In this document: piece by piece, positions 19,946-54,478 of the stretch | Numbering within the stretch: position 1 is the stretch's first letter | Layout of the letters: every line of letters starts with the position of its first letter | DNA from: Obrimoposthia wandeli | Lineage: Eukaryota | DNA length: 64,000 bases | Assembly: GCA_977020255.1 (NCBI GenBank) | Contig: CDROCS010001028.1 | Location: 186,001-250,000 of the forward strand | Reading direction: 5' to 3' | The notes under the pieces: model-generated | Databases searched by the model: none | What the model was told of the DNA's origin: nothing | What the model saw: only the letters and a program-made list of their open reading frames with translations | Program-made: the position numbers and the translations under genes

Positions 19946-20650
19946 TTACGCGTTATTCATCACATTATCGAGGTGATGGCGCATTTCACGTTCAGCAAGA
20001 TCAGGGTTGCCTTGCTGAATGGCTTTGAAGATTTCGACATGGTGCTCGCAACTAATCTGATGCAGCTTAGCAAATGTTTCTGGGTTTCGAGAGCGAATCA
20101 ACCACTGTACTAAGGATTCATAAATCGTAGTCACCATTGGATTACCCAAAATTTCAGTAATCGTACGGTGGAATGCAATATCCGTGTCGATAAAACGATC
20201 ATAATTATCGACTTGCGCTAAGTTGTTTTCTAACGCAACAGAAAGCTTTTCAACATCTTCTTCAGTTCTGACTCGAGCAGCTTCACGTACCACAGCGATT
20301 TCAAACAATTGTCTAAGATGTTCGAACTGCATCTTCTCTTTATCTTGTGACAATAAACCAATAGCAATACCTGATAGACCACTAACGATCGTTTGAGTAC
20401 AAGGACGAGTAACACGCGTCTTTTCGCCACTATTGATTTCAACTAAGCCTTTTTGAGACAGTTTTTGCAAGGCTTCACGAACAGACGGACGCCCCACGCC
20501 AAACGCAGTCATAAGCTCTCTTTCTGAAGGCAAAACATCACCTTCTTTAAACGTGTTATCTAAAATTAATCTTTCGATTTCATCGGTCACAAAATCCGAA
20601 AGCTTAACCTTCTTTAGGGGTTTCAGTGTTAAATTGTCAAGCGTTGACAT
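19946..20650 (-). CDS. nanR: GntR/FadR-family regulator, NanR-like
   Basis: LPSERELM..FGVGRPSVREAL..L..KGLVEINSGEKTRV.RP and FEHLRQLFE closely parallel E. coli NanR. Confidence 0.8.
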   Translation of the reverse strand: MSTLDNLTLKPLKKVKLSDFVTDEIERLILDNTFKEGDVLPSERELMTAFGVGRPSVREALQKLSQKGLVEINSGEKTRVTRPCTQTIVSGLSGIAIGLLSQDKEKMQFEHLRQLFEIAVVREAARVRTEEDVEKLSVALENNLAQVDNYDRFIDTDIAFHRTITEILGNPMVTTIYESLVQWLIRSRNPETFAKLHQISCEHHVEIFKAIQQGNPDLAEREMRHHLDNVMNNA

Positions 20651-20702
20651 AACCAATCCTTATTAGCACATTGCTGTGTTAAGTGCATAATATCTTAAAA
20701 CT

Positions 20703-21686
20703 TTACTGGTCAAAACCAGGAATCAATGCTTTTTGTGCTTGCCGCGCTTTTTTCAAACGTTCCACTGGTACACTCTCGAATGGAAATCGCATGGTTGGTG
20801 TAATGCAGCTCCATATACCCATGGTAGCCATAAACTTATCGACAGCCGCATTACAATACCCTTCTTCAAGTATAAACGGTGCAATTTCTTCATTCATGAA
20901 TTGCTGTATACGTTGTTCAGTTTCAAGCGCCTGTGGATCTAACATTAAACACTGCTGAGTCCATATTTGTGTTGCTTTCGGGCCTAAACAACAGACGTTT
21001 GAGTATGCGCCTTTTGCTCCAACATACGCATCGGTCGCGAGAAAATGACCCGCAACAAAAATAGACGCCACTTGCGGTAATCCTGTAGCAGCGATTTCAT
21101 CAGTGATTCTTGGCAGCTTAAAACCTACTACAGTATCAATCTCATCAAATATAGTGCGAAGTTGTTCCGCGGTTAAACACACTTTAGCGTGAGGAGGATT
21201 GTATAAAATAATGGGTATACCTTGGCACACGCTTTCCACTTTTCGGAGGAAGATCAATGCAGTTTGAGTATTACACGGAAACCAATTTGGTAAAATCACT
21301 TGAACTGCCGTCGGCTGCAGAGTCGCTGCAAATTGCGCACGCCGAACCGCATCTTGTGGGTGGCAATGAGATGCTCCAATTTGAAACGGCATACCAACGA
21401 CACGACATTTCGTCGCGAGCAACTCACTGATACGCTCGAACTCTTCTTCAGTTTGGGTATAAAACTCCCCAGCCGTCCCATTGGAATAAATACCATCTAC
21501 ACCCGCAGCGATGAAATAATCAATCTGCTCGGCCAGCAGCGTATAATTAATAGCTTCATTTTCTATTGGTAACAATAATGTTGCCCAGTTACCTTTAATA
21601 GTTGCAGCGCTTTCTTTCACTCTTTTTTTTTCATTCATTGCTACATCAATAGTTGAAGGCGCATGCGTTTCTGTTGTCATATTCAT
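20703..21686 (-). CDS. DHDPS/NAL-superfamily class I aldolase, non-NanA subgroup
   Basis: SNGTAGEF, ILYNPP, GFK Schiff-base Lys; ATGA overlap with the upstream gene. Confidence 0.85.
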   Translation of the reverse strand: MNMTTETHAPSTIDVAMNEKKRVKESAATIKGNWATLLLPIENEAINYTLLAEQIDYFIAAGVDGIYSNGTAGEFYTQTEEEFERISELLATKCRVVGMPFQIGASHCHPQDAVRRAQFAATLQPTAVQVILPNWFPCNTQTALIFLRKVESVCQGIPIILYNPPHAKVCLTAEQLRTIFDEIDTVVGFKLPRITDEIAATGLPQVASIFVAGHFLATDAYVGAKGAYSNVCCLGPKATQIWTQQCLMLDPQALETEQRIQQFMNEEIAPFILEEGYCNAAVDKFMATMGIWSCITPTMRFPFESVPVERLKKARQAQKALIPGFDQ

Positions 21687-22147
21687 AGCCAATCTGCCTT
21701 CACTTTGATCACGATTTTTTCAATGGCGCTAGGTGTTTCAACGCAAAGCATCGGCCTATGCCATTCGCCAGGAAAAAAGGTGACGCATTGATGCACATAC
21801 AAAGTAAAAACTTGTTCATTAGCAATATCCGATTGTAATGCGGCATCATTATCAGCATCAAAATTCAGCATATTGTCCACATCTACGGTCGCAAGAGGCG
21901 CGGCGTACATCTCTTGCCCTGCTAGCACAATATGGACATCGATATAGCGGCCATGAATTTCTGACAATGCGTCATCCAATAGCTTTGTCGTACTACTGAT
22001 TCGATTAACGAAAACATTCTCACCGTCGATCACATTGATGCCTGTTGCAAACTGCATAGGATCTAGTGACATCACATCGAGAATAATACGTTCAAGGGCT
22101 GAAGGCGTGCTTTTGGCGGTAATGGTAGGAATCGTTGTTAAAATCAT
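21683..22147 (-). CDS. YhcH/YjgK/YiaL (NanQ-like) family protein
   Basis: EIHGRYIDVHIVLAGQE, FFPGEWHRP, KIVIKV. Confidence 0.88.
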   Translation of the reverse strand: MILTTIPTITAKSTPSALERIILDVMSLDPMQFATGINVIDGENVFVNRISSTTKLLDDALSEIHGRYIDVHIVLAGQEMYAAPLATVDVDNMLNFDADNDAALQSDIANEQVFTLYVHQCVTFFPGEWHRPMLCVETPSAIEKIVIKVKADWL

Positions 22148-22342: not shown

Positions 22343-23608
22343 TTAGAGCAACATATTAGGTAAGAACAACACGAGTTGCGGGAAGAAGATAATCAGCAGT
22401 AGAACGGCAATCAGAGGAATTAAGAACACAATCACTGAACGCGCTAAGACCTCATAAGGAATATTACCGACCTTAGATACCACAAAGAGTGATACCCCCA
22501 TCGGTGGTGTCAAAATCCCGAGCATCATATTCAAGACCACAACCACACCGAAATGCACAGGATCTATACCCAGCTGAACAGTAATTGGTAACAGAATAGG
22601 AACCAGAATCAGCAACAATGCCAAGGTTTCAATGAATGCGCCCAAAATGAATAGCATCACAGAAACCATTAGCAAGAACACTATTGGTGAATCTGTTACC
22701 TGCAAAAATAATTCGGCAGCTTTCATTGGTATATCTTCTTTGATAATCAGATAGCCAAATAAACTCACACCACCAATCAAAAACCCGATAACAGCTGAAG
22801 TATTTACGGTTTCATGAATCAAACGTACCAAGGTGCTAAACGTCAATTCTTTGTAAACAAAGAAACCCAAAAACATGGCATACAATGACGCGACAACAGC
22901 GGCTTCTGTTGGCGTAACAATACCCGAGAAAATACCGCCAATGATGATCACTGGTGTCAATAAAGCCAAGAATGCTTCTTTAAATGAAGAGAAAATCATC
23001 TTCATCGATGCACGCGGGTAAACCTTGTAGTTTTTCTTTTTCGCAATGATATAAACCATCACCATTAAGGCTACGGTACATAACAATGCAGGTACAATCC
23101 CCGCCAAGAATAAAGCACCAACAGATGCACCAGACATCACACCGTAAATTACCATTGGAATGCTCGGTGGCATCAATGGACCTATCACACTTGATGCTGC
23201 AGTAATCGCACCTGAGAAACCATCATCATAGCCTTCATCACGCATAGCTTTAATTTCAAGCTGCCCTAACCCACCAGCATCAGCGTGGGCAGATCCTGAC
23301 ATTCCCGAGAACAACAAACTCGCTAAGATATTTACATGGCCTAATGACCCCGTAAAGTGACCCGTTAAGTTACGGGCAAAGTTGAACATCTTGTCGGTGA
23401 TACCTGCCGAATTCATTAATAACCCGCTGAAGATGAAAAAAGGCACAGCCAGCAGTGGGAATGAATTCAAACCAGAAATGATTTTTTGTGGAGAGAGTGC
23501 AATTCCCGAGTTCAACAGTAAATAAGCAATGGAGACGATATACAGCGTAAAAGCGACAGGCATACCGACAGCCAACAATGCTCCCCAGCCCGAAAAAATA
23601 CCTAACAT
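22343..23608 (-). CDS. TRAP transporter large permease (DctM/SiaM-like)
   Basis: SFPLLAVPFFI, SGMSGSAHAD, PPSIPMVIYG, TPTEAA, TPPMG. Confidence 0.95.
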   Translation of the reverse strand: MLGIFSGWGALLAVGMPVAFTLYIVSIAYLLLNSGIALSPQKIISGLNSFPLLAVPFFIFSGLLMNSAGITDKMFNFARNLTGHFTGSLGHVNILASLLFSGMSGSAHADAGGLGQLEIKAMRDEGYDDGFSGAITAASSVIGPLMPPSIPMVIYGVMSGASVGALFLAGIVPALLCTVALMVMVYIIAKKKNYKVYPRASMKMIFSSFKEAFLALLTPVIIIGGIFSGIVTPTEAAVVASLYAMFLGFFVYKELTFSTLVRLIHETVNTSAVIGFLIGGVSLFGYLIIKEDIPMKAAELFLQVTDSPIVFLLMVSVMLFILGAFIETLALLLILVPILLPITVQLGIDPVHFGVVVVLNMMLGILTPPMGVSLFVVSKVGNIPYEVLARSVIVFLIPLIAVLLLIIFFPQLVLFLPNMLL

Positions 23609-23617
23609 AATAAATCC

Positions 23618-24139
23618 CTATTTATCCGTAATTTTCATTAATGGGGAAAGTTGCTTTTTGTTCACGCGCATATCCTTTAATGCCGCGACAGAGGTGCCGA
23701 CATTCAATAATGATTTAATCAGAATCAGAGTGAAACCCAACGGTACTGCCATATACAAGACAGACATTTGCACATCCATGGTGATAGAACCTAGACGGTC
23801 CATACGTTGAGCGAATATATAGCCACGATAAACAATGACAACAGAGGTAGCTGCAAATATTAGGTGAATCATAATATCTAATACGTGTTTCGCAGATTCA
23901 CTCAGACGGTTTGGCACTATATCGATAGCAATGTGATCTCGACGTGACACTGCTTCACTTGCGCCCACAAAAATGATGTAGATATATAACCATCGGGAAA
24001 GCTCTTCAGTCCAAGGAATTCCAATTGAAAAGAAATAGCGACTCACAATCTGAACCGTCAGTACCAATAACATTGCAATAAACAGCGAAACTGAAATGTA
24101 TTTTTCCATCAGTTCCATTTTTCTTATGAGGTTTTTCAT
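23618..24139 (-). CDS. TRAP transporter small permease (DctQ/SiaQ-like)
   Basis: QIVSRY...PWTEELSRW, HIAID; four TM segments. Confidence 0.92.
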   Translation of the reverse strand: MKNLIRKMELMEKYISVSLFIAMLLVLTVQIVSRYFFSIGIPWTEELSRWLYIYIIFVGASEAVSRRDHIAIDIVPNRLSESAKHVLDIMIHLIFAATSVVIVYRGYIFAQRMDRLGSITMDVQMSVLYMAVPLGFTLILIKSLLNVGTSVAALKDMRVNKKQLSPLMKITDK

Positions 24140-24221: not shown

Positions 24222-25187
24222 TTATTGTGTATCGATCAATGTTTGTGTGAAGTTTTCACCAAACTGCTTATTTAATTGTGCGTAGTACGGTTTCATCGCT
24301 ACACGGAATGGGGCTAAGTCAGGATAGGTGACTGTCACACCGGCTTCTTTAAACGTTGCTAAGTCTTTCTCTGTGCTAGCTGTAATCAATTTTTCTGCTT
24401 CTTCCCCTCCAACAGCTAAGGCTTTTATCAGCCAATCTTGCTCTTGCTTAGAAAGATCATTCCAACGATCACCTGAAATAGAAATTGTTTGGTCTTGCAC
24501 CACGTGGTTAGTCATTGCGAGATACGGTTGTACTTCGTAGAACTTCATTGCTTCAATAGAAGAAATTGGGTTCTCTTGCCCATCAACGGCATTGGTTTGT
24601 AGTGCAAGATACACTTCTGCATAAGCGATAGGAGATGGAATCGCCCCTACTCCTTTAGCGTAATCAATCAAAGCTTTAGCGTTTGGAGTCCGCAGCTTCA
24701 TACCTTTCATGTCTTCAATGGAATTAATTGGACGGTTAGAGCTCGTTTCACGTATACCAAAGAACCAACTATCGATCGGCTTAAGATTAAATTCAGTTTC
24801 GAGTTCTTGACGCGCGTCCATGCCCCAAGGGCTGTTGAAAATGGCAGAAAGGTGTTTGTAATCACGTACAAGGTAAGCGGTTTCTAAAGCACCAAGACGA
24901 GGCAGATATTGCGCATAGCCACCAAAAACTTGCATCGACATGTCCAACTCACCTAAAGACACTTGCTCTAGCATTTCATGTACGTTGCCAAGTTGCCCGC
25001 CCGCGTAAAGGCGTAATGTCATCTCTCCGCCTGAAATCGTCTTCAGTTCATCAGCCGCCTTTACCATGCCGTGGTAAATCGGACTATTGTAAGCTTCATT
25101 AAAACCCACGTTCAATTGAGTTTCAGCAGACACGTTTGCAGCAAATAATGCAGTGGCAACCATGCTTAGAGTAAAGAGCTTTTTCAT
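24222..25187 (-). CDS. TRAP substrate-binding protein (DctP/SiaP-like)
   Basis: Signal peptide, GIRETSS, KLRTP, AEVYLALQTNAVDGQENP, EVQPYL..TNHV. Confidence 0.92.
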   Translation of the reverse strand: MKKLFTLSMVATALFAANVSAETQLNVGFNEAYNSPIYHGMVKAADELKTISGGEMTLRLYAGGQLGNVHEMLEQVSLGELDMSMQVFGGYAQYLPRLGALETAYLVRDYKHLSAIFNSPWGMDARQELETEFNLKPIDSWFFGIRETSSNRPINSIEDMKGMKLRTPNAKALIDYAKGVGAIPSPIAYAEVYLALQTNAVDGQENPISSIEAMKFYEVQPYLAMTNHVVQDQTISISGDRWNDLSKQEQDWLIKALAVGGEEAEKLITASTEKDLATFKEAGVTVTYPDLAPFRVAMKPYYAQLNKQFGENFTQTLIDTQ

Positions 25188-25257: not shown

Positions 25258-26187
25258 TTAATTCTTCACAAAAAATACGCCATGTTCTAACTGTTCACCG
25301 TCGAAAATTCGGCGAATTTGTCTTACGTACACATCGATTTTTTTTATATTTTCATTGCCACACCCACCACCTGTATGTTGGGTTAGGTGTATATTCGGTG
25401 TTGTCCATAACGGTGAATGAGCAGGTAGCGGTTCTTGCTTCGTGACATCTAAACAGGCAGTAAATGTACTGTCTGCTAATGCTTTTGCTACCAAGTCATC
25501 TTCATTCACGACTTGACCTCGACCTACGTTAACCACCATAGCTCCAGCACGCATCTTGTTGAACACTTCACGGTCCAGTAGATTATGTGTGGTATCCGTG
25601 GCTGGAATGGTTGATATCAAAATGTCGCAATGCGCCACTGCTTCAATCAAACCATTCTTTCCTTTTGCTTTCATAGCTGTAGTGTCAAAGCTATGTATAG
25701 TCGCCCCAAAAGCGTCGAACAAGGCAGCCGCTTGCTTACCAATACTGCCATACCCCAAGATCAAGATGTCAGCTTCACCGACAAGACGTTTAGTAAAACG
25801 GATAGCGTCTTTTTCCCATACGCTTGACGCTTTAGCTGTCTGCAATGCAGGTAGTTGACGATAAACACTCAAGACATTCGCGACAATTTCTTCTGCAACA
25901 GGAGCGGAAAAGAAGCCCTGTAGGTTGCATACTGTGATATGGCGGTTTTCTAGCCAGTCATAACCATTAAAATTATCGATCCCGACAGAATCCAATAAAA
26001 TGGTTGCCAGGCACGGCATGTCATTAATCCAATCTGTTGGAATATTACCGATAGCAATATCGGCATCTTTGGCTCTTTTAAACTCATTACTGCCATCATT
26101 AAAATGACAAGTCGCGTTAGCTGAGAGTTGCTGTGTTAAATAATTCGCTTCACGTTCGTTCAATACAGGATGAATATAAATGTTCAT
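25258..26187 (-). CDS. D-isomer-specific 2-hydroxyacid dehydrogenase
   Basis: GYGSIG, VNVGRG, LDVT..EP, TQH motifs. Confidence 0.9.
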   Translation of the reverse strand: MNIYIHPVLNEREANYLTQQLSANATCHFNDGSNEFKRAKDADIAIGNIPTDWINDMPCLATILLDSVGIDNFNGYDWLENRHITVCNLQGFFSAPVAEEIVANVLSVYRQLPALQTAKASSVWEKDAIRFTKRLVGEADILILGYGSIGKQAAALFDAFGATIHSFDTTAMKAKGKNGLIEAVAHCDILISTIPATDTTHNLLDREVFNKMRAGAMVVNVGRGQVVNEDDLVAKALADSTFTACLDVTKQEPLPAHSPLWTTPNIHLTQHTGGGCGNENIKKIDVYVRQIRRIFDGEQLEHGVFFVKN

Positions 26188-26244: not shown

Positions 26245-27459
26245 TTACGCTTTCACCCAATGACGATGACTGTCTTCTAATTGTTGTAAGCCATCTTCCA
26301 TTGGAAAACAGTGGTACAGCGCATCGTTGGTATAAGGAAATTGGGCTTCAATATCATCGGTTAACGTGACACCTAAGCCAATATCGTCACCTAAATGGAA
26401 GTGGCCATCGCTAATGCGAGATTCGAGATTGCACATGGCGTTGCGCAGTTCAAAATGAGGCATCGGATATTCAATCAATGAACATCCTGTGGCAAACGCG
26501 GCTACATAATTCGCCATCATCGCAACCGGCCCACCCCAAGAGTGCACAACAGGATTCACGCTACGTTGCTGGGCGTATTCACAAACGGCAATCGTGTCGC
26601 CAATCCCACCTAAAACAGAAGCGTCGGGTTGCACCACGTTGTAATAATTGGCATCAATACGGTCGAACAACTCTTCTTTAGTGGTAACAATTTCGCCACC
26701 AGCAACCACAATGCCCTCTTGCAAAGCTAACAAAGGCAATTGAGTCAGTTTGTCGAGACCTAAGCACTCTTCAACAAACACCAACTCTTCACCGGTTTCA
26801 TGCTGAATATGGTCGCAAAAAGCTTTTACTTGCTCGGCAGTTTGCCCCTCAATCGTGAGATTCTGTGTCATATCAACAGCAACACGAATACCATATTGAC
26901 GACCAGCTTCAATGGTCCAAATAGTTTTAGCCGCTTGATGATGGCGCGCGCGAATTTTGATCGTTTGAATACCACGTTGTACTAGCTGTTCAAGCTCTTG
27001 GGCCATATATTGCGGATGTAACGAATCCCCTCCAGACCCATACATAGCAATTGACTCTACTTTTTTACCACCGAACAGTTCTACTGCTGGGATCTCACGC
27101 GCACGGGATAAGGCATCCACCAATGCAATTTCGATTGCCGAAATAACATGCTGCGCCGCACCTTGTAACGACCAATATGCTGTAACAGTTTTGGCTTTTG
27201 CCAACACATCACCGTAACCGTTACTGATGTCATCACCCGTAATAGCAGTGCCAACCAAGCGTGCAATGCTGGTAAATACATCCGGTGCAAAAACACCTAG
27301 ATACCCTTCTCCCAGCCCTTTTACACCATTATCCAGAGTGATCTCGACCATGGAGCATCCACGAATACCATTCGGCAAATGCAAGGCATTCTCTGCACAG
27401 CCTTCAAACCCGTAAGGTGCGCTCAATAACACTGGACGAACATTGACGATCGTGGCCAT
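26245..27459 (-). CDS. Enolase-superfamily (mandelate racemase subgroup) enzyme, probable acid-sugar dehydratase
   Basis: KIR, VDMTQ, EEC, GGE metal ligands, QPDAS..GG, VHSW. Confidence 0.88.
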   Translation of the reverse strand: MATIVNVRPVLLSAPYGFEGCAENALHLPNGIRGCSMVEITLDNGVKGLGEGYLGVFAPDVFTSIARLVGTAITGDDISNGYGDVLAKAKTVTAYWSLQGAAQHVISAIEIALVDALSRAREIPAVELFGGKKVESIAMYGSGGDSLHPQYMAQELEQLVQRGIQTIKIRARHHQAAKTIWTIEAGRQYGIRVAVDMTQNLTIEGQTAEQVKAFCDHIQHETGEELVFVEECLGLDKLTQLPLLALQEGIVVAGGEIVTTKEELFDRIDANYYNVVQPDASVLGGIGDTIAVCEYAQQRSVNPVVHSWGGPVAMMANYVAAFATGCSLIEYPMPHFELRNAMCNLESRISDGHFHLGDDIGLGVTLTDDIEAQFPYTNDALYHCFPMEDGLQQLEDSHRHWVKA

Positions 27460-28370
27460 TACACTAATCCTTTTAATTGAGGGAGTATTGCAGCACCGCG
27501 CACACCACTCGAATCACCGTGTTCCGCTTTCACCACTTGTGTAGTAACAGCTTTACTGAAGGTGTAACGGCTCAATTTGTCTTGTACCAAGGCATAAATA
27601 CAATCTTGATTGGACATACCGCCACCCAGAACAATGACTTCTGGATCAATGATATTCACAATGCTACCAAGTGAACGCGCTAGTTGGTCGGTATAGGTAT
27701 CGATATGCTGCAAGGCGTCTACATCACCTTGTTCGGCTTGTTCAAAAATAGTTTTGGCTTTTAACGGCACATGCTGAGCAGCATAGGTACGCTCAAAGCC
27801 CGTACCAGAACAAAACGACTCGATACAATTTGTTGACCCGCAATAGCACGTAACCGCTTCACCATCTTGCTCTAGCGTATAGCTGGGCAATGGGTTGTGC
27901 CCCATCTCGCCACCCAAGTTATTTAAGCCAGTTACAACGTCACCATTAATGATAATGCCTGAACCACACCCCGTACCGATAATGACGGCAATACAAGAGT
28001 TTTCAGCATGTTTTGCCGCACCGGATTTAAACTCAGAAATAGCTAAACAATCTGCATCATTAGCAATCGCAATTGGTAAGGCGATGTGTTTTTTCAAGTC
28101 TCCAATGAAATCTTCACCATTGAGATATAACAAGTTGGAGCCCTGCATACGCTGCGTATCTTTATTCAACGAACCGCAACAACCAATGCCCACCGATATC
28201 GGGGTTTGATCGCTTGATAACGCTTCAATGGTTGATACAACCGCATCAAGAAAAGCAGCATAGTTATCTTTTGGCGTCGCTACCCTGACCTTATCGATCA
28301 GGGTGTACGTTGAAGGGTCAAGGCTGACCCCTTCAATCTTTGTTCCGCCTATGTCTAGGCCTATTAGCAT
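27459..28370 (-). CDS. ROK-family sugar kinase, Mak (manno/fructokinase)-like
   Basis: DIGGTK, ANDADC, IIGTGCG, GEMGHNPLP, CYCG...CIESFCSGTGF. Confidence 0.9.
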   Translation of the reverse strand: MLIGLDIGGTKIEGVSLDPSTYTLIDKVRVATPKDNYAAFLDAVVSTIEALSSDQTPISVGIGCCGSLNKDTQRMQGSNLLYLNGEDFIGDLKKHIALPIAIANDADCLAISEFKSGAAKHAENSCIAVIIGTGCGSGIIINGDVVTGLNNLGGEMGHNPLPSYTLEQDGEAVTCYCGSTNCIESFCSGTGFERTYAAQHVPLKAKTIFEQAEQGDVDALQHIDTYTDQLARSLGSIVNIIDPEVIVLGGGMSNQDCIYALVQDKLSRYTFSKAVTTQVVKAEHGDSSGVRGAAILPQLKGLV

Positions 28371-29242
28371 ACACCCGCCTCAATCAGTGCATTCAAGGCT
28401 GCTTTGTGCTCATCAGTCACAACATTCAATGGACGGCGGCAATGTTCGTTTTGAATAATGCCTTTTTGCTTCAATACATATTTCAAACCCGGAATCACAC
28501 CCGCACCGACTAAGGCATCAATTAACACATTCGCTTCACGTTGCAAGGCTGTTGCTTGCTGCGCATTATTCGTGAAAATTGCGGCTTGAATATCAATCAT
28601 GCGCTGTGCTTGAATATTATAAGTAGAGCCAATACCACCATTTGCACCTGCAACAAGGCCAGAAGCCAATATTTCATCAAACCCGTTGAATACTGTTTTA
28701 TCAGGGTTTTGACGAGTAACTTGTTCCATTTGGTATAAGTTGGCAGACGTTTGCTTAAGAGCGACAACACCATCAATATTCAACAATTCATTAATTTGAT
28801 CACCCGATAGATTCATACCCGCGAAAGCTGGGAAGTTATAAACAATCATGGGTTTACCCGCAGCTTGAATCACATCACTGTAATGCTTCTTCAGCTCATT
28901 GAATGCCACCGGGTAGTAAAACGGCGTGACCGCTGAAATCGCTTGATAAGGCATCGCCCCTGCTGCGCGTGCCAAAATTTCACTTTTCCTCGTCGATATA
29001 TCACCTACATGCGCGATTAACGTCATATCTGCAGTCGCAGCTTCTGCTGTTAGCTCAAGGGTCTGAATCCGCTCTTCGGTAGAACAAAGAAAAGCTTCTG
29101 CTGTAGAGCCGCCCACGTATAAACCGTCTAAGCCACTCTCACAGTTGAACTTCACTAACGATGCCAAGTCATCATGGTTAATCGTTTCATCGAGATTAAA
29201 AGGAGTCAGTGTTGCTGCGTATAAGCCTGAAAAATTCATCAT
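28364..29242 (-). CDS. nanA: N-acetylneuraminate lyase family aldolase
   Basis: YVGGSTAE, VYNFP, LKQTS, GFDE, GSTYN substrate-determining motifs. Confidence 0.88.
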   Translation of the reverse strand: MMNFSGLYAATLTPFNLDETINHDDLASLVKFNCESGLDGLYVGGSTAEAFLCSTEERIQTLELTAEAATADMTLIAHVGDISTRKSEILARAAGAMPYQAISAVTPFYYPVAFNELKKHYSDVIQAAGKPMIVYNFPAFAGMNLSGDQINELLNIDGVVALKQTSANLYQMEQVTRQNPDKTVFNGFDEILASGLVAGANGGIGSTYNIQAQRMIDIQAAIFTNNAQQATALQREANVLIDALVGAGVIPGLKYVLKQKGIIQNEHCRRPLNVVTDEHKAALNALIEAGVC

Positions 29243-29269: not shown

Positions 29270-29296
29270 GGTGTGCCTAGTATGCTGTTATACCAG
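29270..29296 (-). promoter_or_regulatory. NanR-type operator
   Basis: Minus strand CTGGTATAACAG-CATACTAGGCACA; the first 12 nt match the E. coli nanA operator start. Confidence 0.6.
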
Positions 29297-29322: not shown

Positions 29323-29443
29323 ACCAAAGAGGCTGTAGAAAATAAGTACAAATTATGTGATTACCGTAGAATTAATGGCAGGAAGAGTTGAATTAATAAG
29401 CAATGCAGGTTATTTCGCGCGTGAGGATTATGTAGGAGATTTA

Positions 29444-29489
29444 AAGAGAAAAGGCAGCTTCATTACAAAGCTGCCAAGGCACTTATAAG
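29444..29489. repeat. 46-bp direct repeat, copy 1 (minus-strand terminator-like)
   Basis: AAGAGAAAAGGCAGCTTCATTACAAAGCTGCCAAGGCACTTATAAG; 43/46 identical to 47372-47417. Confidence 0.9.
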
Positions 29490-48124: not shown

Positions 48125-48679
48125 TTAAAAGCACTCAGTAATTTTAAACCCACTTTCTCCTTTTAATATTCGAACATTAAAACCTTGCGCTTTAAGCGCA
48201 TCATAATTATGTCCGGCTATTGATGGCCAAACAGCAAGTGCCGATAATCGCAAGTTTCCCGTATTCACTAACCGATGAGCGATGAACCCACCGATATGAT
48301 GAATACTCCCCGGAAAGACTTTTTCAATGGTCACTGCACCAGTTTGAGCTTGCAAGATAAGCAGACCTTCACCAGCACTTCCAAAATAGTATTCAGCTTG
48401 TTCGATACGTTCGTGAAAGTGACCTCGGGTCATAAAGAATTCATCACCAACGCTACCCGCTTCAATATGTGATACACCAAAGTTAAGCTCTCCTTCTGCA
48501 GATTCTGCTGGCAGCATTTCAACACTGTATATAACACGATCCTCAGGTAGCGATGCATAGGCAGCTTTATCAGCAAAAATACCATCAAGCGATGATAACA
48601 ACGTTACTTTCTCAACAAGGTTTCCAGCGTTTATCTTACCTGTTACATAATTAATACTAGGGGGTGTTAATACGTTCAT
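48125..48679 (-). CDS. Cupin-type (archaeal-like) glucose-6-phosphate isomerase family
   Basis: FMTRGHFH, AEYY, HRLVNTG, AGHNY. Confidence 0.88.
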   Translation of the reverse strand: MNVLTPPSINYVTGKINAGNLVEKVTLLSSLDGIFADKAAYASLPEDRVIYSVEMLPAESAEGELNFGVSHIEAGSVGDEFFMTRGHFHERIEQAEYYFGSAGEGLLILQAQTGAVTIEKVFPGSIHHIGGFIAHRLVNTGNLRLSALAVWPSIAGHNYDALKAQGFNVRILKGESGFKITECF

Positions 48680-48688
48680 ATACCGTCC

Positions 48689-49855
48689 TTACTTTGCAAC
48701 TCTAAGCAGTTCTGAAAATGCTAAAAATAGATGATAAAAAGTACTCGCTGGTGAGTTTTTTTGTAATGGCAGCCCTTCGCAATCCAGTTGATCAAACCAA
48801 AGACCGTTCTGAGTCGGATTCAAGTAAGCGCTAAAAATCACATCAACAGCTTGGCAAACACGTTGTTCCCGTTCAATAGATGGGTTGCGTTCCCATAATG
48901 CTATCTGAGCTTTTAAGTATTCAGTTTGGCACCATAACCTCGACGTTGAACGAAATGCTTCCCCGTTATTTTTAACTTCATCTCTGACCAAACCGTTAAT
49001 GTTATGCCCATACATCGAAGCAAAACGATTCAACCTTTCAATGTAAACTGACGCGTCAATTCCTGTAAGCTTTTGATAATGATGTAGCAACCAAATCCAT
49101 TCATAATGATGTCCAGGATCAACGAGATTACTTAGAGGATGTTTAGGATCAAGCTGGCTATCAAAAAATTCACATAAATATTCATCTTGCATAAAACGGT
49201 CTGTAAACAGGTTAAAAATACTGCTTGCTCGATCTAGCCATTGAGCATTATCGGTATGTTCATAGCACACCATTAATGCTTCAAATAAATGCATGTGCGG
49301 ATTCTGGCAACGTAACGAAAAATAATGTGTTGATGAATAAAATCCACCATTTTCTACGTCTGCCAATTCAGACTGGAACCATTGATAAATAGCTTCCATT
49401 TTATCTAGACTAGTCTGTTCCCTAACTAACCGGTAATGCCATGCGTAACCCAATAACGCAAAAGCATGTTCATAAGCGTTGGTTTCATCATTTTTAATGT
49501 TCAGTTCATCATCAAGTGAGAATACAAATGTCTCTTTCTCAGTTTGAAATTGAGGGAAGCCAAGATTAATTGCTTTCTCTATCTCTTGCCTAGCATCAAT
49601 AAGACCAAGCTCTGTAGCATGAGCATAAACATATAATTGACGAGGCTGAACACGAAAGCGGATAACGTTTTCTTGGTAAACGCGGCCATCTTGATAAATG
49701 CCTTCGGGGAAAATACCGGTCTTTTTATCAAAGTAGTGATGCCATCGTGGAAGTGCGTGTTCAGAAAGCCATACCTGACAGCGTTTCGCTTGCTGCGAAA
49801 TGGTATTCATAGTGATATCTCTAAGTTTAGAAAGTAAAAGAATAGAGAGAGCCAA
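48689..49855 (-). CDS. AGE-family epimerase/isomerase (likely start 49810)
   Basis: RVQPRQLYVY, QNPHMHLFEA, PGHHYEW, RLWCQTE, YH. Confidence 0.88.
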   Translation of the reverse strand: MALSILLLSKLRDITMNTISQQAKRCQVWLSEHALPRWHHYFDKKTGIFPEGIYQDGRVYQENVIRFRVQPRQLYVYAHATELGLIDARQEIEKAINLGFPQFQTEKETFVFSLDDELNIKNDETNAYEHAFALLGYAWHYRLVREQTSLDKMEAIYQWFQSELADVENGGFYSSTHYFSLRCQNPHMHLFEALMVCYEHTDNAQWLDRASSIFNLFTDRFMQDEYLCEFFDSQLDPKHPLSNLVDPGHHYEWIWLLHHYQKLTGIDASVYIERLNRFASMYGHNINGLVRDEVKNNGEAFRSTSRLWCQTEYLKAQIALWERNPSIEREQRVCQAVDVIFSAYLNPTQNGLWFDQLDCEGLPLQKNSPASTFYHLFLAFSELLRVAK

Positions 49856-49878
49856 AGCCCTCTCATTATTTGCTTACC

Positions 49879-50727
49879 TTAAAAGAGGCCTACCGCGACA
49901 CCAAGGGCAGAGATGACAACCAAAGACAACATGGCTTTTACTGGGCTTAGGTTTTTCTTTGCCATTGCATACCAAGTTCCAAGCACGATCACTAATGGCA
50001 TCAGTTTAGGGAAAATACCGTCAAGCATCGCCTGAACATTGATATTCACACCATCGCTGGTCACAAACTCAAGTCCCGTACCAAGATTGACATAGCTTGC
50101 CGCCACGCCCCCCATAACAAAAACCCCCAGAAGCGAGAGAGCTTCTCGAATTTTTGTCGATTTATGACTTACCAGCACTTCTACTGACCCCGTCCCCATC
50201 TTATATCCCTTCATAAATAAGGTATAAGAACCGACAATGACAATGGCATTAAATGCAACGATATAAAACAGTGGACCAAGCATACTGCCACCAGCAGCTA
50301 AGGCCATACCGATACTGAGTAGAATAGGCACAAGCATGCCGGGTACCATAGAATCACCGATACCGGCAATCGGCCCCATCAAGCCAACTTTTAACGTATT
50401 AATGGTTTCGCCATCAATAGGCTCACCATTGGCTTTCTTTTCTTCTAAACCCACCGCCAATCCACTGATAATGGCGCCGAGCTGTGGCTCAGTATTATAG
50501 AAAGAGGAGTGGCGTTTCATTGCCTCCTGACGCTTATCTTTGTTGGGATAAAGCTTTTTAAGTGCTGGCATCATTCCAAGGCAAAAACCGAATGATTCTA
50601 AACGTTCGAAACTCATTGATGAAAGGTTGTACATCATCCATGAACGCCAACATTTAATGAGGTCTTTCTTATCTAACGCGATCTTGGCATTAATATCAGT
50701 GCTGAGTTGATCATGTTTTGTAGTCAT
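49879..50727 (-). CDS. PTS Man/Fru/Sor family EIID
   Basis: FYNTEP, KVGLMGPIAGIGDS, GLFVMGG-like motif, LDGIFPKL. Confidence 0.93.
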   Translation of the reverse strand: MTTKHDQLSTDINAKIALDKKDLIKCWRSWMMYNLSSMSFERLESFGFCLGMMPALKKLYPNKDKRQEAMKRHSSFYNTEPQLGAIISGLAVGLEEKKANGEPIDGETINTLKVGLMGPIAGIGDSMVPGMLVPILLSIGMALAAGGSMLGPLFYIVAFNAIVIVGSYTLFMKGYKMGTGSVEVLVSHKSTKIREALSLLGVFVMGGVAASYVNLGTGLEFVTSDGVNINVQAMLDGIFPKLMPLVIVLGTWYAMAKKNLSPVKAMLSLVVISALGVAVGLF

Positions 50728-51530
50728 TAGAATTCATCCTCATCGTCATCCATTACTTGATTTGGTGTTACAGCCGTAGGCTGTGGATCTGGCTTGTAGT
50801 TGTAATGCAGTAACGCAAACAGTGCACCGATCATCACAAGGCCAACCATATTGAGGTTCAGAAAGACAATACCGACAAAACCAACGAGGAAATAAATCAG
50901 CATCGACGTTTCTTTAATTATTTGTTTTAACAAGATGGCGATACCAACAGCTGGTAAAATACCACCAAGTACCGTCATGGTATTGATGACCAAATCTGGC
51001 AAGCTTGCCATGAAGCCTTCGATGTATTGATTACCAAAATAGACAGCGATAAAGGTAGGAATGAAACGCATCAAAAAGTTAGTGATCTGAGGATAAATGG
51101 CAGTATTCATATATACCCCCTTGTCATCCCCATCATCTACCGATAAATCGGCACGGTGGTTCCAGTAAGAGTTCAGTACCATCATGAAGTTAAAAATAAT
51201 GGTGCCAGCAATACCAATGGTTGCCGCAATCGCCACCGCAACTTCAACCCCCTGCCCTGACATAATACCGAGCGCAACAGCAGGGTAAGCAACAAAGTTA
51301 AGATCTGCAGGCATCGAACCGCCTGGCGTTACCATCGCAATATAAACAGCCTGAACAGCTACGCCTACCATTATCCCCGTCTGAATATCACCTAACACAA
51401 TGCCAACCAACATTCCGGAAACCAATGGCCGACTTAATGTATACCAACCACCAGTAAGACCTAATAGCCAAGGGGTTGATAACGCACCGAGATAACACAG
51501 TATCCCGATGACGACTGCTTCAAAAAACAT
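50727..51530 (-). CDS. PTS Man/Fru/Sor family EIIC
   Basis: RPLVSG..VG..LGD, GGSMPAD, GGILPAVG. Confidence 0.93.
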   Translation of the reverse strand: MFFEAVVIGILCYLGALSTPWLLGLTGGWYTLSRPLVSGMLVGIVLGDIQTGIMVGVAVQAVYIAMVTPGGSMPADLNFVAYPAVALGIMSGQGVEVAVAIAATIGIAGTIIFNFMMVLNSYWNHRADLSVDDGDDKGVYMNTAIYPQITNFLMRFIPTFIAVYFGNQYIEGFMASLPDLVINTMTVLGGILPAVGIAILLKQIIKETSMLIYFLVGFVGIVFLNLNMVGLVMIGALFALLHYNYKPDPQPTAVTPNQVMDDDEDEF

Positions 51531-51571
51531 AATCTATTCCTTCTAATCACGTTAAAGAGTTTGGACCGCTG

Positions 51572-52069
51572 TTATTTATTTAATTTTTTCTGTGCGGTAT
51601 CCCAGCTGTAGGCGCTGGCATCCGGTACGAGCCGGAAATCAATTTGATGCCCCAATTGAGATAGGTATTCAAAAGCTGAAACTTCATCTGGGTTTACGCT
51701 CTGATTATTTCCGATTGTTATTGTGCCTTCACGAGCACTCATTGGACCGACATTAATCTTCCCATTGAGGTTAGAAATATCGATACCGGCTTCACTGATT
51801 CTCTGCAGCGTGACTGGCGATTTAGCAATAACAAAATATTTCTTATCACTCGCTATCACTTTAGGCAGTTTACTAATCGCGGTATCTGCATCAAATAACC
51901 ACACTTTTACATCGGTCACTGCCCCTTTCATTACCTGAGAAAGCAATGGGTCAGCAGCGACAGCATCATCGATGGCAATAATGCCATCACACGGTAATTC
52001 TTTTGCCCAGCGTGTCATTAGCTGACCGTGAATCACACGATCATCAATTCTTACAAATGAAATAGTCAT
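51572..52069 (-). CDS. PTS Man/Fru/Sor family EIIB
   Basis: RIDDRVIHGQ phospho-His motif. Confidence 0.94.
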   Translation of the reverse strand: MTISFVRIDDRVIHGQLMTRWAKELPCDGIIAIDDAVAADPLLSQVMKGAVTDVKVWLFDADTAISKLPKVIASDKKYFVIAKSPVTLQRISEAGIDISNLNGKINVGPMSAREGTITIGNNQSVNPDEVSAFEYLSQLGHQIDFRLVPDASAYSWDTAQKKLNK

Positions 52070-52078
52070 GCTTACTCC

Positions 52079-52507
52079 TTAAAAATCGTCGTCTTGTTCA
52101 ACACTTACCGGCTTTGCAACCACAATAGTATTAAGCGCTTCTTGTTGTAATGTATGTGCAACGGATGCTGGGTCTGACTCTTCCACAAAATCAGCTGTCA
52201 TCAATAAAGTGGGGAAATTAATACCAGTAACTACTTCGACAGGAACAGGAAAACTGTCATCAAATGCGTAAGTACAGGCAATGTTATAAGGTGTACCGCA
52301 TTCCAGATCACAGAGCACCACAATGCCTTCAACTTGGCCTGCGATGTCTCGAATTTCCGTACTAAAATCTGTTTTAAATCGCTCTATTCCCCCCTCTTCG
52401 GTAAGCGATACAGATGATGTATTCTGAAGTTCACCAAACACCATTTTTGCGCTTGAAATTAATGCGTCAGCCAGTGGCCCATGAGTTGCTATTAAAAAAT
52501 GCAGCAT
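52079..52507 (-). CDS. PTS Man/Fru/Sor family EIIA
   Basis: IATHG, DLECGTPYN, GINFP. Confidence 0.92.
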   Translation of the reverse strand: MLHFLIATHGPLADALISSAKMVFGELQNTSSVSLTEEGGIERFKTDFSTEIRDIAGQVEGIVVLCDLECGTPYNIACTYAFDDSFPVPVEVVTGINFPTLLMTADFVEESDPASVAHTLQQEALNTIVVAKPVSVEQDDDF

Positions 52508-52509
52508 AA

Positions 52510-54270
52510 TTAACCTCTTACGTATGCTTTAATGGTTGCAATTTCTGCCCCTTCACTCGCCCCATGCGGCTGAATAATGTATTCGCCAACTTGAGCTGGA
52601 ATAACGAAGGTTTCTGCATAATGAACAACAAATGGATCAAATATATTGTTAGGGCTTAGTACCAGCGCCTCTTTACCTTCAACTAAATTCAGAACATTGA
52701 CGTTCCCCTCAGTATTGTGACTAACAGGTTGGCTGAACCAATGACGGCGCGTTTCGATGAATTCTCGCTCATGGAGTCCCGTCTTCTCTTCTCGCCATCC
52801 TTCGCCTTCAGCAATCGGCGTAATGGCATTGACTAAATGCTCAGCACACCATTCTGTATTGCAATCCCATTGAATAACTTCTTTACCATGCTCTAAATGC
52901 ACCGGACGCGGCTGGCCATCGAGACCTAAACGATCCCAATCCCAGAGTTTGAATGTGAAGATATATGGCGTGGCGCTAATCTCTAACACCATCGAATTCG
53001 AACCCGAACAGTGGACGGTGCCGGCAGGAATCAAAAAGTGGTCATGTTTCTTCGCTGGAAATTGATTGATAAAGCGTTCATCATCAAAGGTCTTTTCCCC
53101 TCGTTGTGCGGCTTCAAGATCAGCCATCATCTCATCGGGGTTCGTTCCTGTTTTAGTGCCTAAATATACACTTGCATCATCACCAACATCGAGCATGTAA
53201 TAACTCTCATCTTGGGTGTAGTGCATGCCAAACTCTTGCTGTATATATTCAGTCAATGGATGGACCTGAAGGCTGAGATGCTGGCCTTCCATGGTATCGA
53301 GGAAGTCAAAACGAATCGGAAATTCAGCGCCAAAACGAGCATGCACTTCTTCACCGAGTAATCGCTTAGGTTCGAGTAATACAAGATCTTGTGAAGGAAC
53401 TTCAATGGTCACATCATCGTATTTGAGCAAAAGACTATTTTCTTCCGGTACACAGTCAAAACACCAAGCGTAGTTTGGCTTTGTTTCATCTAAATCACAG
53501 ACTTCCTTCATCCACTGTCCACCCCAAACGCCAGGGTCAAAGAATGGCACTAGACGAAATGGCTGTCGCACCGTTTGCTCTAAACCCGCCATAAACGCTT
53601 CACCCGTCACCATTTTCGGCGTTAGTGCAGCGTTTGTATCCAACAGAAAATCAGCTTGAGGAAGTAATTTCGTTTTATAACGGTCGAAGACACGCCATTC
53701 AATGAAAAATGCGCGTTTATAGCGACGAAGGACATCTTCATCGGTATTTTCAACACCCCAGTTACCCAACTCACCACGACGAAAACGTTGTTGAATCTCC
53801 CATCGAGCAAGGTCGGCATAAATGAACGTATCACCATCAGCAAATAGTCTAGCCCCGTGGCCATACACCACAATTAAACCATCTGGTGCATTTTCAATTT
53901 GATGTTTGATCTCGGAGAGTTTTTCAGCATCAAAAAACTCATTCAATTTATGCGGCGAAATCACCCCAAACACACGATCATCGGTAATATTACGTTCTAA
54001 CATATCGAAGATGTGTTCTTCGCTATATTTAGCTTCATCTGTAAATACTACATGGCTAGGCTTTAATGGCGTAATAAGCTGCTCTAGTAACTCGTTATGA
54101 TCAACACCATGGTATGTATCGATAACCAAAACATGCTTTTGATTATTACTTACTCGTTGCTTAATTTGTTCAACGATCGTTGACCAACCTTGCCAAGCTT
54201 GATTATCAAATCCCTTAATGTTCACATGAGGAAATTTGTCATAATTCGAGTTGCCAGATAGATACTTCAT
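52510..54270 (-). CDS. Long-form class I mannose-6-phosphate isomerase-like cupin protein
   Basis: PFFDPGVWGG, LSLQVHP, QDESYY, IPAGTVH, EIS; ~230-aa extra N-terminal domain. Confidence 0.85.
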   Translation of the reverse strand: MKYLSGNSNYDKFPHVNIKGFDNQAWQGWSTIVEQIKQRVSNNQKHVLVIDTYHGVDHNELLEQLITPLKPSHVVFTDEAKYSEEHIFDMLERNITDDRVFGVISPHKLNEFFDAEKLSEIKHQIENAPDGLIVVYGHGARLFADGDTFIYADLARWEIQQRFRRGELGNWGVENTDEDVLRRYKRAFFIEWRVFDRYKTKLLPQADFLLDTNAALTPKMVTGEAFMAGLEQTVRQPFRLVPFFDPGVWGGQWMKEVCDLDETKPNYAWCFDCVPEENSLLLKYDDVTIEVPSQDLVLLEPKRLLGEEVHARFGAEFPIRFDFLDTMEGQHLSLQVHPLTEYIQQEFGMHYTQDESYYMLDVGDDASVYLGTKTGTNPDEMMADLEAAQRGEKTFDDERFINQFPAKKHDHFLIPAGTVHCSGSNSMVLEISATPYIFTFKLWDWDRLGLDGQPRPVHLEHGKEVIQWDCNTEWCAEHLVNAITPIAEGEGWREEKTGLHEREFIETRRHWFSQPVSHNTEGNVNVLNLVEGKEALVLSPNNIFDPFVVHYAETFVIPAQVGEYIIQPHGASEGAEIATIKAYVRG

Positions 54271-54332
54271 ACATCACCCTTGATTAATCTGTTGGTGATA
54301 TATTAATCAGCAAATGCGCTTTTCATCAAATA

Positions 54333-54462
54333 GGTTAACGTGGTTAACCCATCATTTATCATTTATTAACCCTCCTAATAACCCAATTTATCGATATTAG
54401 TCACAGTTATTCGCCGTTATTTTGCTCAAATTAGGTTAAACGATTAATCGTATAGTTAACCT
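54333..54462. promoter_or_regulatory. Palindromic operators in the divergent promoter
   Basis: GGTTAAC-GTG-GTTAACC (54333-54349); TTAAACGATTAA LacI-like core (54436-54447). Confidence 0.5.
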
Positions 54463-54478
54463 AAATATAGGGGCATTC

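Follow-up and report, generated by a model that had tools for sequence, protein, structure and literature searches.

A candidate second NanR-type-regulated operon for a sialic-acid-family sugar acid in Photobacterium, with KDN as its possible substrate

A nan-type operon in addition to the canonical sialic acid cluster

The stretch of DNA considered here (hereafter the window) comprises 64,000 nucleotides, positions 186,001 to 250,000 of contig CDROCS010001028.1 in the Obrimoposthia wandeli assembly GCA_977020255.1. On its minus strand, from 29242 to 19946, it carries a run of ten genes in which no strong internal terminators were seen. The run starts with the genes for a sialic acid lyase (NanA2) and a ROK sugar kinase, contains a single transporter of the tripartite ATP-independent periplasmic (TRAP) type and ends with the gene for a NanR-like regulator; neither NanE nor NagA is encoded in it. 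We tentatively propose that these genes form a second operon with NanR-type regulation in a deep-sea Photobacterium, devoted to a sugar acid of the sialic acid family, and that 2-keto-3-deoxynononic acid (KDN) would be its best-fitting known natural substrate. It is on balance probable that the operon serves an acid of this family other than plain N-acetylneuraminic acid (Neu5Ac), and that the aldose released from it is phosphorylated by a hexokinase-type ROK enzyme, a statement that covers KDN as well as smaller ulosonic acids. KDN taken specifically is the best single candidate, since no other well-known natural sialic acid gives rise to a neutral hexose; at the same time, it is a rather doubtful identification.

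In the proposed route, the TRAP transporter, whose binding protein is a SiaP paralogue, would import a 3-deoxy-2-ulosonic acid other than ordinary Neu5Ac. NanA2 would split the imported acid into pyruvate and an aldose, and the coupled Mak-like kinase would phosphorylate this aldose, which would most likely be neutral and not N-acetylated. With KDN, the products would be pyruvate and D-mannose, followed by mannose-6-phosphate and, via the housekeeping isomerase ManA, fructose-6-phosphate; ManA (TIGR00218) was found in five of five related genomes carrying the cluster. The canonical Vibrio transporter SiaPQM does not use KDN: V. cholerae and V. vulnificus, in which the canonical cluster is the only one, grow on Neu5Ac and N-glycolylneuraminic acid (Neu5Gc), whereas KDN supports no growth and is not transported by VcSiaPQM (PMC4959520). 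For the H. influenzae binding protein HiSiaP, the Kd for KDN is 42 µM, an affinity more than 300-fold below that for Neu5Ac (PMC4646407). As the canonical systems do not serve KDN, a dedicated KDN system would fill a real gap, and the ecology would fit, because KDN belongs to the sialic acids found in lower vertebrates (PMC4959520).

The assembly that contains the window (1.35 Gb, 6912 contigs) is of host or mixed origin and holds dozens of bacterial DHDPS and ManA copies. Arguments from absence are impossible within it, and related Photobacterium and Vibrio genomes were therefore used. The proteins of the operon are 87-100% identical to their counterparts in Photobacterium profundum, P. indicum and P. 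frigidiphilum, and the contig is assigned to Photobacterium, within this group, on the basis of these identities. Elsewhere in its genome, P. profundum possesses a canonical cluster, consisting of a Vibrio-type NanA, RpiR, NanE, NanK, an SSS transporter, NanQ and SiaPQM. Since the canonical Neu5Ac cluster is kept elsewhere in the same species, the window operon constitutes a second system, which probably serves a sialic-acid-family sugar other than that of the canonical cluster.

The aldolase NanA2

The first gene of the operon (28364..29242, minus strand) encodes NanA2, an E. coli-type lyase of the N-acetylneuraminate family with 292 amino acids. The protein exceeds the cut-off of the NCBIfam NanA equivalog model NF003164 (343.1 bits, cut-off 281), scores below that of the older model TIGR00683 (298.8 bits, cut-off 382) and is 50% identical to E. 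coli NanA. Alignment to the latter revealed that the catalytic Schiff-base residue Lys165, Tyr137 and the carboxylate site Ser47/Thr48 are retained, as are the sugar site Gly189-x-Asp191-Glu192 with Ser208 and the residues Tyr110, Thr167 and Val251. Glu192 of NanA contacts O8 and O9 of Neu5Ac (PMC4016182), and its retention makes a nine-carbon polyol tail the simplest reading. Judged by these residues, NanA2 is a true E. coli-type NanA that should be able to hold a nine-carbon tail.

The pocket of NanA2 differs from that of the E. coli enzyme at six positions (G49A, I139F, L142F, S143A, Y190F and F252I). The six residues are the same in Photobacterium, Vibrio fluminensis, Enterovibrio, Aeromonas veronii and Aliivibrio fischeri, except for Ser143 in V. 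fluminensis and A. veronii, and these shared changes across five genera define a distinct NanA2 type. Two of them, I139F and L142F, introduce bulkier side chains and are identical in all five genera. The E. coli N-acetylneuraminate lyase (NAL) uses D-mannose at 91% and D-arabinose at 1.2% of the rate with N-acetylmannosamine (ManNAc) (PMC4016182). As NAL already accepts D-mannose, the aldolase alone neither requires nor excludes KDN.

The pocket also bears on an alternative to which we assign a low probability, namely that the operon handles a smaller or C3-oxygenated 2-ulosonic acid. This could be 3-deoxy-D-manno-octulosonic acid (Kdo), from which D-arabinose would arise, to be converted by the fructokinase-like ROK enzyme to arabinose-5-phosphate, or a 2-keto-aldonic acid as in the 2-ketogluconate route of Pseudomonas. 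A narrowed NAL pocket favours the eight-carbon Kdo (PMC4016182); however, NanA2 keeps Glu192, Asp191, Ser208 and Val251 of the nine-carbon enzyme, and the low rate of E. coli NAL on D-arabinose likewise speaks against Kdo. A 2-ketoaldonate route, in turn, would leave NanA2, the operator and the YhcH-family protein of the operon (see below) unexplained.

The translationally coupled kinase

The second gene (27459..28370, minus strand) encodes a Mak-like ROK sugar kinase of 303 amino acids, as deduced from its open reading frame, hidden Markov model scores, motifs and a phylogenetic tree. It shares 7 nt with nanA: the nanA stop codon TAA (28364-28366) lies within ATGCTAA, the ATG of which is the start codon of the kinase gene (28370-28368). 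A second overlap is found at 27459, where the kinase stop and the start of the following gene form a TAATG. The overlap of the nanA and kinase genes is kept in Photobacterium, V. fluminensis, Enterovibrio, A. veronii and A. fischeri, and is therefore not a product of chance. An earlier note on this DNA had described the two genes as translationally coupled and the kinase as closer to Mak than to NanK, and both statements agree with our data, the first through the 7-nt overlap and the second through scores, motifs and the tree. The NCBIfam score is highest on the Mak/fructokinase model NF007108 (284.6 bits, cut-off 443), followed by the NagK model NF009835 (231.7 bits, cut-off 380) and the NanK models NF003461 (125.8 bits, cut-off 283) and NF047821 (117 bits, cut-off 450); all four scores lie below the respective cut-off. 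Both motifs quoted in the note, GEMGHNPLP and CYCGSTNCIESFCSGTGF, are present in the kinase, which contains the Mak-type signatures GE.GHNPLP, the zinc motif CYCG..GC.E.F.SGTGF and the small-domain loop N..LNG. In an alignment, GHNPLP, CYCG...SGTGF and N..LNG are common to the kinase and E. coli Mak, but not to NagK or NanK, and Glu154, found in the kinase as in other ROK kinases, is replaced by a His in NanK.

P. profundum encodes its own NagK (502.8 bits on the NagK model), a second Mak-like ROK protein and NanK. A recent duplication of one of these host genes could be ruled out as the origin of the operon kinase, which is 36-37% identical to NagK and the Mak-like protein, and 25% identical to NanK.

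The kinase is also central to a second, unlikely explanation, which holds that the substrate is a sialic acid with an N-acyl group or another modification, such as Neu5Ac, Neu5Gc or a derivative of these. In that case, the ROK protein would be a non-orthologous kinase of ManNAc or another N-acetylhexosamine (HexNAc), and NanE, NagA and NagB encoded elsewhere would finish the route. ROK kinases of the Bacteroides route indeed act on N-acetylglucosamine (GlcNAc) (PMC8461474). However, NanK is already present in the canonical cluster, the motifs of the kinase are those of Mak rather than NagK or NanK, and an epimerase gene is missing from the operon. The bulkier Phe139 and Phe142 of NanA2 and a changed loop next to Asn10 in the binding protein also speak against an N-acetyl group.

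Regulation and the constant core

The last gene of the operon (19946..20656, minus strand) encodes a NanR-like regulator with the Pfam domains GntR and FCD, which scores just under the cut-off of the NanR model NF003011 (246.1 bits, cut-off 260). About 50 nt upstream of the nanA start codon lies a Nan-box operator (29279..29296, minus strand) with the sequence GGTATAACAGCATAC at 29294-29280, which is almost the same as GGTATAACAGGTATA, the nanA operator of E. coli K-12 as taken from the genome record. A Nan box made of GGTATA repeats was present upstream of nanA2 in every lineage with the cluster that was looked at. The matching operator and the NanR-like regulator are direct evidence that the operon derives from a nan system of the E. 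coli type and shares its mode of control, and they tie it to a sialic-type inducer. The same two elements also fit the N-acylated alternative, since they are of the type found in the E. coli Neu5Ac system. Further upstream, a consensus scan gave a weak match to a promoter-like site (29352..29381, minus strand), just downstream of the terminator hairpin of aphA (29453-29475).

The gene 21683..22147 (minus strand) encodes a YhcH/YjgK/YiaL (DUF386) protein that is related to, but has diverged from, the sialate anomerase NanQ. It is recognized at the family level (TIGR00022, 101 bits), but reaches only 95.7 bits on the anomerase NanQ model (cut-off 160), on which the NanQ copy of the canonical cluster scores 188.9 bits.

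A sister cluster found in Enterovibrio (locus L054, 7169-14265), A. veronii (L083, 6238-15397) and A. fischeri (L084, 6161-13256) contains a NanR-like regulator, a Nan box and the overlapping NanA2-kinase pair. Its TRAP binding protein is a different one (25-27% identity), and it holds a true homologue of GH88 unsaturated glucuronyl hydrolase (180 bits to 2zzr). In Enterovibrio and Aliivibrio, these genes are followed by YhcH, and in Aeromonas a BNR sialidase is located nearby. The NanA2-kinase pair is thus the constant core, while the transporter and the accessory enzymes are exchangeable. This constancy speaks for an action of the kinase on the product of NanA2. The pairing of the core with a sialidase in Aeromonas counts in favour of the main proposal and of the N-acylated alternative alike.

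Two observations on the sister cluster may be added. Its GH88-like gene was considered as an AGE-type epimerase, which was ruled out by its true homology to unsaturated glucuronyl hydrolases. GH88 enzymes add water to an enol ether adjacent to a carboxylate; by analogy, the hydration of a 2,3-didehydro-sialic acid would involve the same local chemistry.

The binding protein SiaP2 and the evidence against KDN

The transporter is encoded by three genes on the minus strand: 24222..25187 for the solute-binding protein (DctP), here named SiaP2, 23618..24139 for the small membrane subunit (DctQ), identified by domain search, and 22343..23608 for the large membrane subunit (DctM), identified by domain and hidden Markov model searches. 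The best solved relatives of SiaP2 are all SiaP proteins, those of P. profundum (7t3e, 302 bits, 48% identity), V. cholerae (276 bits) and H. influenzae (228 bits). Alignment to the solved SiaP proteins showed that the residues Arg127, Arg147, Glu186, Asn187, His209 and Asn150 of the carboxylate/O2 site, the roles of which have been described for SiaP (PMC4089482), are kept, and that the rest of the pocket is remodelled. In HiSiaP numbering, the changes Asp48 to Asn, Asn154 to Leu, Ala11 to Glu, Glu17 to Ile, Phe170 to Tyr and Asn212 to Gln were found, and the loop around Asn10 is rewritten. All of these substitutions, and those of the tail-binding residues described below, are invariant across the SiaP2 clade. 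From this pattern, the ligand of SiaP2 is predicted to be a 2-ulosonic acid, the distal part of which would be held differently from that of Neu5Ac.

Several findings weigh against KDN, the first of which comes from SiaP2 itself. The residues involved in binding of the glycerol tail and in closure are replaced (Asp49 to Val, Glu67 to Val, Arg50 to His and Arg70 to Gly). In SiaP, Asp49 coordinates the glycerol moiety and Arg70, Arg50 acts as a closure latch, and Glu67 contacts Neu5Ac, the exchange E67A causing an approximately 1000-fold loss of affinity (PMC11550005, PMC4089482). As the tail of KDN is that of Neu5Ac, the loss of the residues that hold it is the main sequence-level argument against KDN; however, it is not decisive, because several new polar residues appear in the pocket. 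The combination of a lost tail site and a kept carboxylate/anomeric site would instead suit a smaller acid such as Kdo.

Secondly, the operon encodes three extra enzymes, an enolase-superfamily enzyme, a 2-hydroxyacid dehydrogenase and a DHDPS-family protein, which occur without exception in the seven sequenced operons of this type and would have no role in a KDN route. Thirdly, NanE was detected in 72 of 201 sampled Vibrionaceae genomes (36%), but in eight of eight genomes with the NanA2-kinase core, which represent about four independent lineages. This co-occurrence fits either an add-on of sialic acid specialists or a dependence on NanE, so that a ManNAc route with NanE acting in trans is conceivable; it counts as evidence for the N-acylated alternative. 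Fourthly, the maximum-likelihood tree places the kinase in a Vibrionaceae-specific group, outside the group of E. coli Mak and NagK and far from NanK. On this evidence, the enzyme forms its own Vibrionaceae/Aeromonas group and is not a Mak orthologue. Its closest relatives outside nan clusters are found in clusters of the chitobiose/cellobiose type; the one with annotated neighbours lies beside a cellobiose-type phosphotransferase system (PTS), a deacetylase and a GH1 enzyme. Kinases of the same group with 57-64% identity are mostly found outside nan clusters (22 of the 30 best-scoring loci do not adjoin nanA), a context that fits a general hexose kinase recruited into the operon. The vibrio relatives with about 60% identity were set aside as functional evidence, as no characterised member was found in the literature, and the work on Vibrio glucosamine kinase gave no lead either. 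The functional statements made here rest on sequence, gene context and published residue roles.

The proposal of the earlier note that KDN is converted via mannose to mannose-6-phosphate is thus partly upheld. The Mak-like kinase, a true NanA, an operon free of NanE and NagA, the separate Neu5Ac cluster and the presence of ManA in the related genomes agree with it, whereas the lost tail residues of SiaP2 and the three extra enzymes are left unexplained. Its corollary, that KDN would be used without NanE and NagA, matches the gene content of the operon; independence of NanE is unsupported, given that the core-carrying genomes all possess it.

The hydrophobic replacements in SiaP2 also brought up legionaminic and pseudaminic acid. 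Both were set aside, since the aldolase product would be a 6-deoxy sugar that a 6-kinase could not use.

Three additional enzymes and their occurrence in other phyla

The gene 26245..27459 (minus strand) encodes an enolase-superfamily protein with the Pfam domains MR_MLE_N/C and the residue pattern of the mandelate racemase subgroup, probably an acid-sugar dehydratase. It is remote from solved and curated dehydratases (best scores of 60 bits in PDB and 94 bits in NCBIfam) and belongs to a large family, members of which are 45-51% identical across many phyla. Lys168, Asp196, Glu230, Glu256, Asp279 and His306 are invariant in this family, a pattern expected of an active enzyme of the mandelate racemase subgroup. 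The next gene (25258..26187, minus strand) encodes a member of the D-isomer-specific 2-hydroxyacid dehydrogenase family, as revealed by domain and hidden Markov model searches. The third enzyme, DHDPS2 (20703..21692, minus strand), is a remote class I member of the DHDPS/NAL family (46.7 bits on Pfam DHDPS), in which the equivalents of the Schiff-base Lys and Tyr137 are retained and Gly-His replaces Asp191-Glu192; the listed start of its open reading frame is probably too far upstream, because the orthologues have about 300-309 amino acids. The enolase-superfamily enzyme and the dehydrogenase cannot act on mannose or ManNAc, as their substrates must be a carboxylate with an alpha-hydrogen or carry a 2-keto/2-hydroxy group. 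The three enzymes may act on the imported compound or on a modified form of it.

Neighbourhoods were read around eight distant members of the enolase-superfamily family. In seven of the eight, a DHDPS-family protein with the NanA sugar-binding signature is accompanied by a 2-hydroxyacid dehydrogenase, a DHDPS2 orthologue or both. A NanA-like protein and DHDPS2 were found in Polycladidibacter, Chelatococcus and Microvirga, a NanA-like protein with both dehydrogenase and DHDPS2 in Opitutus (L077, 7038-15249), and a NanA-like protein with the dehydrogenase in Tunicatimonas (L074, 5037-10191) and two metagenome-assembled genomes; L075 (6784-15190) and L080 (1-10197) are loci of this module. Several of these clusters also contain BNR_2 sialidase-like genes, a SASA sialate esterase domain, and SSS or MFS transporters. 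An association of the module with NanA-like aldolases thus recurs across these genomes.

One conceivable explanation for this arrangement is that 2-keto reductase and aldonate dehydratase activities supply a 3-deoxy-ulosonic acid to the aldolase; another is that the route might resemble 2-ketogluconate catabolism with its sequence of kinase, reductase, dehydratase and aldolase. It could further be speculated that the enolase-superfamily enzyme and the dehydrogenase form the conserved front end of an undescribed branch of ulosonic or sialic acid catabolism, which is finished by the NanA2-kinase core; we give this idea only a slim chance. The dehydrogenase would then act on a C3-oxygenated 2-ulosonic acid and reduce it at C2, dehydration by the enolase-superfamily enzyme would follow, and a NanA-like aldolase would cleave the resulting 3-deoxy-2-ulosonic acid, a sequence of steps that is just as improbable; the GH88 homologue of the sister cluster would possibly hydrate 2,3-unsaturated sialic acids in such a scheme.

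The extra enzymes also bear on the smaller-acid alternative, as the ROK kinase, the dehydrogenase, the dehydratase and DHDPS2 would reproduce the reaction logic of KguK, KguD, Edd and Eda; however, the NanA2-kinase core also occurs without them. This last observation is compatible with a further explanation, according to which two unrelated modules, one for sialic acids (NanA-kinase-TRAP) and one with an acid-sugar dehydratase and an aldolase, were fused by chance and are co-transcribed, acting on different substrates. The existence of the enolase and DHDPS2 pair without the kinase points in the same direction. A chance fusion is nevertheless highly improbable, given that the operon has only a single transporter, that Photobacterium and V. 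fluminensis share an unchanged order of the genes at 52-84% identity, and that in unrelated phyla the enolase module is found with NanA-like aldolases, often together with sialidase-like genes.

Together with NanA-like aldolases and sialidase-like BNR genes, the module ranges from Vibrionaceae to Alphaproteobacteria, Bacteroidota and Verrucomicrobiota, and it is also present in metagenome genomes. The NanA-like proteins of Chelatococcus (L076, 2412-3302), Microvirga (L079, 2753-3679) and Polycladidibacter (L073, 4804-5700) have an Arg where E. coli NanA has Leu142; this position corresponds to that of the carboxylate-binding Arg of DHDPS. For these alphaproteobacterial enzymes, the residue hints at an acidic aldehyde product.

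Relation to known pathways

Bacterial sialic acid utilization is described by two schemes, NanA-NanK-NanE and NanA-epimerase-RokA. The operon is a third arrangement beside both, which is kept in fish- and deep-sea-associated Vibrionaceae and in Aeromonas, and its distinctive features are an aldolase pocket and a binding-protein pocket of its own and a hexokinase-type kinase. With the E. coli nanATEK-yhcH/NanR system, it shares the NanA type (50% identity), a NanR-like GntR/FCD regulator, a near-identical Nan box and a YhcH-family gene; in contrast, it lacks NanE, has a Mak-like ROK kinase in place of NanK and a TRAP transporter in place of NanT, and differs by the three extra enzymes and the six pocket substitutions. 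SiaP2 is a clear paralogue of SiaP from the Vibrio/Haemophilus SiaPQM systems (48% identity to PpSiaP), sharing Arg147, Arg127, Asn187, Glu186 and His209, but differs in Asp49, Glu67, Arg50, Arg70, Asn154 and the Asn10 loop, which give it a clade signature of its own. The 2-ketogluconate route of Pseudomonas comprises KguK, KguD, Edd and Eda. Its reaction types would be the same, whereas the four enzymes belong to other families or subfamilies, and the likeness rests on pathway knowledge.

The Bacteroides route uses the lyase NanL, an AGE-type epimerase and the ROK kinase RokA (PMC8461474). It resembles the operon in combining a sialate lyase with a ROK hexokinase other than NanK; in the operon, however, an AGE-family epimerase is missing, and its kinase falls into another ROK group. 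E. coli grows on KDN via NanT and NanA, according to Hopkins et al. 2013 as cited in PMC4959520. The conversion of KDN to mannose and pyruvate would be the same chemistry, but in E. coli it is a side activity of the Neu5Ac system, whereas in the operon a dedicated transporter, aldolase and kinase are proposed to act.

A search of the accessible literature library yielded no description of the cluster, of a dedicated bacterial KDN pathway, of KDN, Kdo or nonulosonic acid clusters with an enolase-superfamily enzyme or a 2-hydroxyacid dehydrogenase, or of any part played by such enzymes in sialic acid catabolism. If the operon does serve KDN, it would be the first dedicated bacterial pathway for KDN uptake and catabolism, and it would explain how marine bacteria feed on KDN-rich fish glycans. 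Whatever the substrate, the recurring module of enolase-superfamily enzyme and 2-hydroxyacid dehydrogenase points to as yet unassigned chemistry in nonulosonic acid metabolism.

Distribution and neighbouring genes

The ten genes are found in conserved order in P. minamisatsumaniensis, P. makurazakiensis and one further Vibrionaceae genome (58-94% identity), as well as in V. fluminensis (37-84% identity), where an additional kinase paralogue is present upstream. This second ROK kinase of the nanA-linked type (L055, 7869-8783) is 62% identical to the window kinase and is located immediately upstream of nanA2. Protein matches on shared contigs suggest that the operon also occurs in strains of V. 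splendidus, V. scophthalmi and V. nomapromontoriensis, and V. coralliilyticus and V. mediterranei possess homologues of the enolase-superfamily protein with 66-67% identity.

Two Vibrionaceae (L081, 11612-13302; L082, 7604-9243) carry a diverged NanE-like gene with 40% identity to canonical NanE. It is paired with its own NagK-like ROK gene and two large genes, and a Mak-like ROK gene is transcribed divergently; the latter is uninformative as evidence, because the NanE-like gene has its own second ROK. A 475-amino-acid amidohydrolase near the Enterovibrio cluster was considered as a NagA analogue and ruled out, as it is a TRZ/ATZ-type deaminase-like protein.

It had also been suggested that the route might feed into a phosphomannose isomerase (PMI)-like gene at 52510-54270, which is unsupported. 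The 586-amino-acid product has no match in Pfam or NCBIfam, and its language-model features resemble clusters automatically named phosphomannose isomerase, which serves as a lead only. The gene stands first in a separate operon for a mannose-family PTS, which has a divergently oriented LacI-type regulator of its own and lies at a distance of 23 kb from the nan operon; nothing was found that links the two, and the related genomes contain an ordinary ManA. The PTS island (48125-55546) encodes IIA, IIB, IIC and IID components and a protein of 388 amino acids with a faint similarity to D-mannose isomerase (30 bits).

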